64,000 bases of DNA, taken from positions 62,001-126,000 of the forward strand of contig JAKMXF010000111.1 in assembly GCA_024704765.1 (NCBI GenBank), read 5' to 3'. The position numbers were made by a program, and so were the translations under genes. Below the pieces are notes generated by a model, which searched no databases, was not told the DNA's origin, and saw only the letters and a list, made by a program, of their open reading frames with translations. Positions 56,601 to 59,600 of the stretch are shown here, piece by piece. Position 1 is the stretch's first letter. Each line of letters begins with the position of its first letter. The stretch comes from Oopsacas minuta (lineage: Eukaryota > Animalia > Porifera).

Positions 56601-59600
56601 GCAATTCAACACCGGGAAACAAATCTGAGGTTATACCCTTGAAAAGTGGAAGATCATGTGACAAGAATTTCGGTAGATTTACATCATTAATCGACCTCAA
56701 AAGTAGGACATCTTCGTTTTCATCTGGGTATTTAAGTTTCAAGTTTGCAGCTGCAGTTAATACAGATTTCACAGCACGCATACCGTAATCATAATGGCAT
56801 TGTGAACTGAGCTGTTCAGAGCATAGCCGATAAGTCGCGACAATTTTAACTGACAAAGGCCGCGCATTCACAAAACCGCAGGAGTATAACATTATTTCTG
56901 CGATCATACCATAGTCTGGTACCATCATAGCGACTGTACGGAATAAAGCTTTGAGATTATCTGGTAATTCAGATCGACCTGCATAACCAGGATTCATGGT
57001 AATAAATACAGCGCATGTGGGGTCGAGTTTGATCTCGGTGCCTTCGAAGAGGAACGTCCGCACACCTGGAAAATAATGAAAATAAAGTCATGTGAAAAAT
57101 CTAAGATTACAAGTTGTACCGACGGGCATGCTATTCAGTTGATTCATCTTCATATAGTGCCTCAAATGTCAATACATGGTCAGCACAGGTTGATATATTT
57201 TAATATTTCGTTCACACAATATTTTCTAAAACAGTTTGAGATTTAAGCCAAAACTAACCTGATAGAATTCCACGTTGGATTGTCAATATTTGTTGGGCAA
57301 CAACAGACAACACTTCTAAATCAATTCTATTGAACTCATCAAAACAAGACCAAGCACCACATGAGGCTAATCCTTTGAAGAATTTTCCTAGCGCCAAATA
57401 ATCCAATCCATCTGAACAATTGAATACTACACACTGTTTTGCTACTGCCTTAGCGAGATCCTTGACTGTCTCAGTTTTGCCTAGAAAATAGAGATATAAA
57501 AACTAGAATATCTAGATAATCAAAAGGTCATATTTTTGGAGTCTTATGTAGTGTTTTTGGGAGCACTTTAAGATTAGGGTGCCTCCACAAACGGCGTGCT
57601 AGGCCGAAATAATTTGGATGAAGGAACAATAAACAAATATGAGTAAAACCTCCAAAAATTACTATGAATTGATTCAAACTGACCTGTCCCAGCTGGGCCT
57701 TCTGGCGCACCGCCCAAATGCAAATGCAGCGCACCAAACAGTGTTCTATAGCATCTGTCTGTTAGCGGAGTTATAACCAGTCGTCCAGTATTCCCTAGAT
57801 ATTCATAACCATATGGTAAGCTAGAGTTTATCATTCTGGTGATCATGTTCTCGTCTTCCCAGTAGTAACGCATTTGAGAGAGCCAACTGAAGTCATCTTC
57901 ACGTTTTACCTGTATAATGTATGTATAGCATTATATGTAAGATCAGCTGTTTCTGGCTGTTTATTGTTCTGGTTATGTAGCCACATATTTCAACAGTTTT
58001 TCATGATAACCATGGTTATTGAAGGAACTGTATACGAAAATGGAATATAATCGCTATAGCATATTCTTATGATTTATAGTCAAACCATATTCCACTATAG
58101 ATGGCACAAGCATAAATGGCTATAATACAAAACCATAGTTATCGCTTCTCGGCCTGTATGGCTTAGATCAAGTGAAAAAATACTGTTCTTATCAGTGTAA
58201 TAGCTGATACCCCTTCAGTGTAAGGTGGAGACTATTACTTATTTTTTTCAGGCGGATAGTGTATGAGCTTGCTCAACCTAACTGCGGGTTACGCTGGAGT
58301 TGCACTTATTCCAGTTGTGGCCCATTTTCTACATATAAAAAGAAATTAAAGAGATGCAAATAATTTAAATTACACATGCGCGCCAGTGTTGCCAGATTAT
58401 GAACCCCAAGTTCATGGATTTGGCTTTAGGAGGAACATTTGATTTATTGTAAGAACATGGCGTGAACCATTATTTACAAAATAGATGTCGGTTTTGGCAT
58501 ATGAAGTTTTCAATTATTCCAACTTATATACGTAATTGTAAAATCTTGTATTTTTAGCAAAAATATATTTGCCTTCAAATGCAAAAAGCATTTGCATTTG
58601 AAAGCCAAAGCCAAAGCCAAATCAATATTACCTTCAACTGGACAAGATTAGCCAACACATCTCTAGAATGCACATCTAGCACAACCAAAGCACCCAATGT
58701 AGTTCTATTCTGTTTACTCAATTTGCCTCTCACCAACTGCACAATTCCAGAAATCTGATCATTATTCACTTGTAAATAAGCTTCCAACGCATCCTGCCCA
58801 CTTCGTATAGCTAAATGTACAGCCTGTGTCCAATAGTATTGTGAGATGCAAAGCACGATTTGACCCGGCCATGAGACGACCCATTCAACTCGGACGCTTT
58901 CTGGATATGCCACCAGGGCCTTTTGAATAATTGTATGGATCGATCGTACCATGTCACTCTCAATTTCTAGCAACCATTTCTCAACTTGGCCGCGAGCTTT
59001 CGCGGTATTTATGACGTCATCAAGTTTAACTACCTCTTTTTCTGAACTGCAAATGTGTGTAATTTCGAGATCTTCAGTGAAAGTGAGCTTTGAAATTCCT
59101 AAAAGTATCCATAATTTTGCAGATAAAATGCGAAAAAATTCGCGAAATGAATCAACATACCTTCAAAACATTTTTTCAAATGCGGTTGCACTCTTGTCGG
59201 ATCTTTGGTCTCAGACAGAATTTCTAATAATTCATCATTCGAAAGGAAGAAAAACCTCGCGAAATATAATCGTTTCTTTTCCAAATACTCATTCAATCCT
59301 TTCAAAATCAACTCCAATAAAGCATTATTCAATTTCATATTATCCAACATTTTATCAATTTCTATGACAGCTAGACAATGAGGATCTTCTGTTGTTTTCT
59401 TCATTGTATCACGCCATACCTTGTCAACCTTCATAAACCTAGATTAGATAAAGGAGTCAATAGTTCACGCCAAATCCAAAAATCTATGAATTTCGTTCGC
59501 TCTTGATCTGGCAACACTGTTATAGAGAAATATTACATCACCAAAAGTGATAATAACAAAAATTTGAAGTATACGTGGATAATTCTGTAAGAGATTTTAC

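Follow-up and report, generated by a model that had tools for sequence, protein, structure and literature searches.

The nucleotides of U2 snRNA that pair with the intron branch site, GUAGUA, have been held to be invariant from yeast to humans and are near-universal in other eukaryotes. These bases underlie structural models of branch adenosine selection, and two of the uridines among them, U34 and U37, are pseudouridylated in other species. In the branchpoint-interacting stem-loop, A35, G36 and U37 provide the toehold for intron positions -2 to -4, after which U34 pairs with intron position -1 (PMC13167188, PMC13019295). The best-known lineage lacking the branch-point recognition motif is the trypanosomatids, in which the U2 of Leishmania major carries UUAUAA instead of GUAGUA (PMC4950102), and in which the polypyrimidine tract is believed to direct the choice of branch site (PMC13601561).

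The sponge locus described here, for which trypanosomatid U2 is the nearest precedent, carries two U2 genes, U2-A and U2-B, in which GUAGUA is replaced by a run of adenosines. U2-B is likely to be a functional, faster-evolving paralogue of the U2 snRNA of this glass sponge lineage, within the fuller explanation developed below, and glass sponges may recognize their introns differently.

U2 genes within the introns of an axonemal dynein gene

The only Rfam matches in the window (the whole 64-kb stretch of sponge DNA that was analysed) are two U2 genes on the same strand (Table 1). The second copy, U2-B, matches the U2 model from end to end (E 1e-21, with a gathering score of 46), which bears out its original identification as U2; the start predicted for it at 58141 also holds, while the predicted end, 58325, falls 5 nt short of the Rfam match, a difference that is immaterial. 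From 58141 onward the window reads ATCGCTTCTCGGCC.

The window, with a G+C content of 34–37 %, encodes an axonemal dynein heavy chain on the minus strand, a GCN2-like kinase and an Arf-family protein whose nearest named relative is from the glass sponge Vazella pourtalesii (82 %). Spliced mapping of the dynein product P0371 (4017 aa) onto the window yields 21 GT-AG introns, two of which host the U2 genes in antisense orientation. The same dynein gene was fetched, via its conserved exons, from six ENA sponge assemblies: ERZ25072730 (loci L001–L004), ERZ25071281 (L006, L008), ERZ25069837 (L007), ERZ25072740 (L011), ERZ20067936 (L012) and ERZ25766962 (L013). Two further dynein loci, L009 and L010, contain no U2 and are uninformative because their neighbouring genes differ.

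In several assemblies the Arf-family, GCN2-like kinase, START-domain and dynein genes lie on one contig (window positions 7680–8342, 28919–35327 and 38600–64000; L005–L008), in line with the extensive microsynteny described for glass sponges (PMC10282587). ERZ25072730 has two contigs bearing the locus (L001/L003 and L002/L004), which are 96 % identical at four-fold degenerate sites, have identical U2-A genes and represent either haplotypes or a very recent duplication. The locus of ERZ25766962 contains a retroelement with RVT_1, RNase H and integrase domains 3′ of the dynein gene (L013 17241–20693) and, at its start (L013 1–1232), a PIF1-helicase ORF that precedes the first dynein exon listed for this locus by about 1.3 kb; at the corresponding positions the other loci have no equivalent of either.

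The large intron that hosts U2-A also contains, on the sense strand of the dynein gene, an ORF of about 103–105 aa (window 44450–44758, minus strand), which recurs in the same intron elsewhere (L003 15007–15324, L011 12780–13097, L013 7894–8211, L006 11346–11657 and L007 12037–12384). Its product is 47–61 % identical across lineages, has the appearance of a basic region followed by a coiled coil and gives a borderline match to Pfam bZIP_Maf (22.3 bits, cutoff 22). As this ORF lies outside the annotated dynein product, it is probably a nested small bZIP gene.

Table 1. Positions of the U2 genes, their flanking elements and their host introns (window coordinates unless a locus is named)
Feature	Position	Strand	Basis or remark
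U2-A snRNA gene (A-type, conserved main copy)	46375..46564	+	Rfam RF00004, 143.6 bits
Putative promoter boxes of U2-A: GAACCCATAG at -60 to -51, CTAATAAAC at -30 to -22	46315..46353	+	conserved boxes
Dynein intron, 3190 nt, antisense host of U2-A and of a nested small sense-strand ORF	43928..47117	-	spliced mapping
U2-B snRNA gene (B-type)	58141..58330	+	Rfam RF00004, 111.6 bits, model positions 1-192; syntenic orthologues
U2-B branch-point recognition region, UG-AAAAAA-UAC	58173..58183	+	six A at 58175-58180 replace GUAGUA
PSE-like box of U2-B, AACCATATT	58083..58091	+	-58 to -50
TATA-like box of U2-B, GCATAAAT	58110..58117	+	about -31 to -24
3′-box-like element downstream of U2-B, ATAAAAAGAAA	58335..58345	+	conserved ATAAAAG(A)-like element
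Dynein intron, 722 nt, GT-AG, antisense host of U2-B	57910..58631	-	spliced mapping of P0371
B-type orthologue, ERZ25071281	L008 8333-8519	-	104.7 bits, five A's, syntenic intron
B-type orthologue, ERZ25069837	L007 76-259	-	88.6 bits, four A's, syntenic intron

Replacement of the branch-point recognition sequence

At the usual site of GUGUAGUAUCUGUUC, both genes read GUG-AAAAA(A)UA-CUGUUC. The first 33 nt of U2-A, which include the U6-pairing 5′ sequence of helices I and II (AUCGCUUCUCGGCC...GCUAAGAUCAAGUG), match the Rfam consensus exactly, as does the CUGUUCUUAUCAGU that follows the altered stretch, whereas the seven bases after G33, normally UAGUAUC, are AAAAAUAC. The replacement thus consists of three substitutions (U34A, G36A and U37A) and one inserted A, it affects the branch-point recognition sequence only, and the sequence on both sides of it is perfectly conserved; both of the uridines that are pseudouridylated in other species are lost. 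In U2-B, the run of six A's that had been predicted was confirmed by direct reading of the sequence (58171–58186, AGTG-AAAAAA-TACTGT). Its branch-site region is therefore AAAAAAUA, one A longer than the AAAAAUA of U2-A, and neither gene retains GUAGUA. Over the U6-pairing 5′ sequence, U2-B departs from the consensus only in the loop of stem-loop I and at A23U.

Beyond this region, the cmscan alignments, the RNAalifold consensus and the individual folds show stems IIa, IIb, III and IV, the last with its AUUGCAC loop, and an Sm site that is single-stranded and has C instead of G after its U-run. GUAGUA is a mark of canonical function, not of homology, since the U2 of trypanosomatids also lacks it, and the two genes were therefore classified as U2 homologues with a changed functional motif. 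Both RNAs presumably assemble into snRNPs.

Conservation of the A-type gene

An A-type U2 gene is present, in antisense orientation, in the same large dynein intron of all six other assemblies, with scores of 131.8–148.9 bits. In the alignment, the first 70 nt of the gene, including the A-tract (GUGAAAAAUAC / GUGAAAAAUACUGUUC), are identical in seven of seven assemblies, and the 3′ part is 86–97 % identical. Four-fold degenerate sites of the host gene are near saturation, with identities of 0.37–0.48 when the window is compared with each of the six other assemblies, or the remaining deep lineages with one another (0.55–0.71 in three closer assembly pairs), and the intron sequence flanking U2 cannot be aligned between deep lineages. 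The invariance of 70 nt against this background indicates that the A-run is old and under strong purifying selection, which excludes decay or assembly error. The original prediction that the A-tract change is old and selected, rather than a sign of pseudogene decay, is thus supported.

Upper stem IV of the A-type gene of ERZ25071281 (L006 10536–10724, minus strand) contains a G-G mismatch (CCAG to CGAG), the sole broken pair among the A-type genes.

Predicted recognition of the branch site

In the proposed scenario, U34, G36 and U37 would have been changed to A in the ancestor of the sampled glass sponges and one A inserted after U39, converting GUAGUAU into GAAAAAUA, while the remainder of the RNA (the U2/U6 helix I–II sequences, stems IIa and IIb, the Sm site, and stems III and IV with the AUUGCAC loop) would have stayed canonical. 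The A-run is modelled as the loop of a branchpoint-interacting stem-loop closed by G31–C41, U32–A40 and G33–U39. The predicted hairpin with its five-A loop has a folding energy of -2.5 kcal/mol, compared with -1.0 kcal/mol for the canonical one, neither value differing from those of shuffled sequences. An all-A toehold would be expected to pair with U-rich intron sequence immediately upstream of the branch adenosine, and the predicted branch site would be UUUUAY rather than yUnAy or UACUAAC.

The intron sequences examined were 116 GT-AG introns of the one dynein gene, orthologous across the seven assemblies, with local-composition shuffles as controls. TTTAY is in excess where its A lies at -25 to -16 (30 sites, with 18.0 expected by chance, z 3.3) and again where it lies at -35 to -26 (z 2.3), and 49 of the 116 introns contain such a site between -35 and -8, compared with an expected 36.9 (z 2.6). 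The enrichment of YTRAY is weaker (z 1.7), and CTRAC is nearly absent from the -35 to -8 zone, occurring in 3 of the 116 introns. For TTTAY, the enrichment is not significant in the introns of the window alone; contiguous complementarity of the introns to the A-tract is likewise not significant (z 1.1) and no better than that to the canonical model (z 1.8). An initial enrichment of the k-mer TTTAT relative to intron interiors was discarded as largely an effect of composition, all permutations being similarly frequent. The evidence for a U-rich branch site, which comes from the orthologous introns of a single gene, is modest and suggestive only. The broader proposal, that glass sponges form a clade without any GUAGUA-containing U2, in which every U2 snRNA presents an all-A toehold and the branch site consists of a U-run plus the branch A and has merged with the U-rich tract, is one to which even weight for and against can be given.

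A different explanation is that the A-tract U2s are specialized minor variants, which serve a subset of substrates, such as introns with U-rich branch sites or spliced-leader trans-splicing, alongside a canonical GUAGUA U2 whose gene lies in another part of the genome. The comparison covered about 64 kb of this genome and about 20–30 kb of each relative, which leaves room for such a gene; variant snRNAs are expressed by many animals, the glass sponge Aphrocallistes vastus does trans-splice (PMC10282587), and the complementarity of the introns to the A-tract falls short of significance. Nevertheless, the A-type genes score like typical canonical U2 genes, up to the 148.9 bits given above, a 70-nt stretch perfectly conserved across seven assemblies is what a principal U2 would be expected to show, and the scarcity of CTRAC in the branch-site zone also argues against this explanation, which is considered unlikely.

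Divergence and structure of the B-type gene

Alignment of the two window genes shows that their 5′ 68 nt are nearly identical (two substitutions and two one-base indels), whereas the 3′ halves are strongly diverged, in accordance with the original description. Syntenic B-type orthologues were found in two of the other assemblies (Table 1). In ERZ25072730 the intron syntenic with the host of U2-B contains no U2-B, even at an E value of 10; the remaining three loci end short of this intron. The three B genes group as a single clade in a maximum-likelihood tree (100/99 support), which implies one duplication before the window lineage separated from those of the two orthologues.

The same data may be read as the record of a gene under relaxed constraint that is becoming a pseudogene, leaving the A-type as the only working U2. 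The B-type branches in the tree exceed the A-type branches about fivefold in length, the Rfam scores are lower (88.6–111.6 bits), the length of the A-run drifts between 4, 5 and 6, stem I of both orthologues contains an A-A mismatch and A29 is substituted in both, one of them has C28A in the region of U6 helix Ia, and the gene is missing from ERZ25072730. On the other hand, 62–65 of 72 columns in the 5′ part and 83–86 of 112 in the 3′ part are kept between the window gene and its two orthologues, despite silent-site saturation between the window lineage and these two assemblies (four-fold-site identity of 0.44–0.45). The window U2-B has none of the changes seen in the orthologues, and its helix Ia and stem I pairing are canonical.

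The secondary structure also tells against decay. RNAalifold recovered stems I, IIa, IIb, III and IV from eight sequences, and 96.4 % of the pair cells in the canonical stems are standard pairs, compared with 33–50 % when the partners are slid. Two-sided changes occur at four pairs (11 cells), giving a covariation score that none of 500 shuffles reached; one, in lower stem IV, is a G-C to A-U change fixed between the A and B types, the other three are all in stem III (e.g. U-A to G-C), and pairing is also maintained through one-sided changes. The stem IV strands that had been quoted for each copy are both present, GGGUUGCACUGG..CCAGUAGCGGCCC in U2-A and GGGUUACGCUGGA..UCCAGUUGUGGCCC in U2-B. 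The 3′ half of U2-B folds into three hairpins (IIb, III and IV) on either side of a single-stranded U-run that corresponds to the Sm site; its folding energy is -37.6 kcal/mol (z -2.3), and 4 of 200 shuffles fold equally well. The 3′ half of U2-A has the same arrangement, with a folding energy of -41.7 kcal/mol (z -4.6). MAFFT partly misaligns stems IIb and III of the B-type; read by hand, they form good hairpins of different sequence. The compensatory divergence proposed for the two copies is supported in an alignment that includes orthologues.

Elements flanking the genes are retained as well. In all ten U2 genes from the seven assemblies, a (G/A)AACC(C)ATA box stands at about -60 to -52 amid intron DNA that is otherwise unalignable, and a TATA-like box at about -33 to -24, which reads GCAT(A/G)A(A)T in all three genes of the B-type and (C/G)T(A/T)ATAA(A/G) at the same distance in the A-type. 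Most of the ten also have an ATAAAAG(A)-like element 8–20 nt past the RNA. This layout fits that of snRNA genes in which a proximal element (PSE, near -55) is combined with a 3′ box, and to judge by their position and conservation the PSE-like, TATA-like and 3′-box-like elements may function as promoter and 3′ box. A scan of the 64-kb window with the promoter pattern gave counts at chance level. The RNA is not followed by a run of four or more T's, which argues against termination by Pol III. U2-A and U2-B would accordingly behave as independent snRNA transcription units, each antisense within an intron of the dynein gene.

The retention of B-type sequence, pairing and flanking elements makes the decay of U2-B improbable. 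The original view that the second copy has been kept by selection is upheld by its syntenic, monophyletic orthologues, its pairing and its flanks, and is qualified by its roughly fivefold faster evolution and by the changes in stem I and helix Ia of the orthologues. As a functional paralogue, U2-B might share some division of labour with U2-A.

That the A-run is a homopolymer artefact of sequencing or assembly is a negligible prospect: homopolymer lengths are error-prone, and the count of six in U2-B could be off by one, but three substitutions and an insertion are no mere error of length, the run recurs in ten genes from seven independent assemblies, and 96 % of the words sampled from the U2-B locus occur in each of three public runs. 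Four public runs from one study, none recorded as RNA, contain words of the locus (shares of 0.96, 0.96, 0.96 and 0.39). The run with 0.39, X4, is similar in size to one with 0.96, and could be either an RNA library with mature RNA only or a thin DNA library.

Comparison with known U2 RNAs

A literature search retrieved no paper linking sponges or Hexactinellida with U2, two glass sponge genome papers make no mention of snRNAs, and U2 genes with an A-run were not found in JGI metagenomes or GTDB genomes. If an animal clade has long kept another sequence at the bases that pair with the branch site, this core contact of the spliceosome can be rewritten in animals, and a matching shift in the branch-site code, with U at positions -1 to -4, is predicted. 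Such a U2 would provide a natural variant for studying the toehold strand-invasion model, the role that pseudouridine plays at U34 and U37, and the way in which SF1, SF3B1 and PHF5A co-evolve.

Compared with the canonical metazoan U2 (RF00004), the sponge genes are homologous over their full length and alike in stems I–IV, the U-run of the Sm site and the AUUGCAC loop, but where the canonical RNA has GUAGUA they have AAAAA(A)UA, without U34 and U37. U12 snRNA, which does the job of U2 in the minor spliceosome, also has a different branch-site pairing sequence; identity with U12 was rejected, as Rfam clan competition assigns both genes to U2 and their 5′ end is the U6-pairing sequence of U2.

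The variants of U2 described in animals, including human and developmentally regulated isoforms, are diverged paralogues that accompany a main copy, show most of their differences in the 3′ stems and possess promoters of their own, and in these respects resemble the sponge B-type. To our knowledge, no described animal U2 variant alters GUAGUA. In the sponge, the replacement is found in both the main copy and the variant.

Trypanosomatid U2 is comparable in lacking the branch-point recognition motif, and spliced-leader trans-splicing is common to trypanosomatids and at least one glass sponge. However, the replacement sequences of the two lineages are unrelated, and the U2 of trypanosomatids is a short Pol III transcript with a degenerate Sm site and no stem III, whereas the sponge RNA is, outside its A-run, a fully canonical animal U2.
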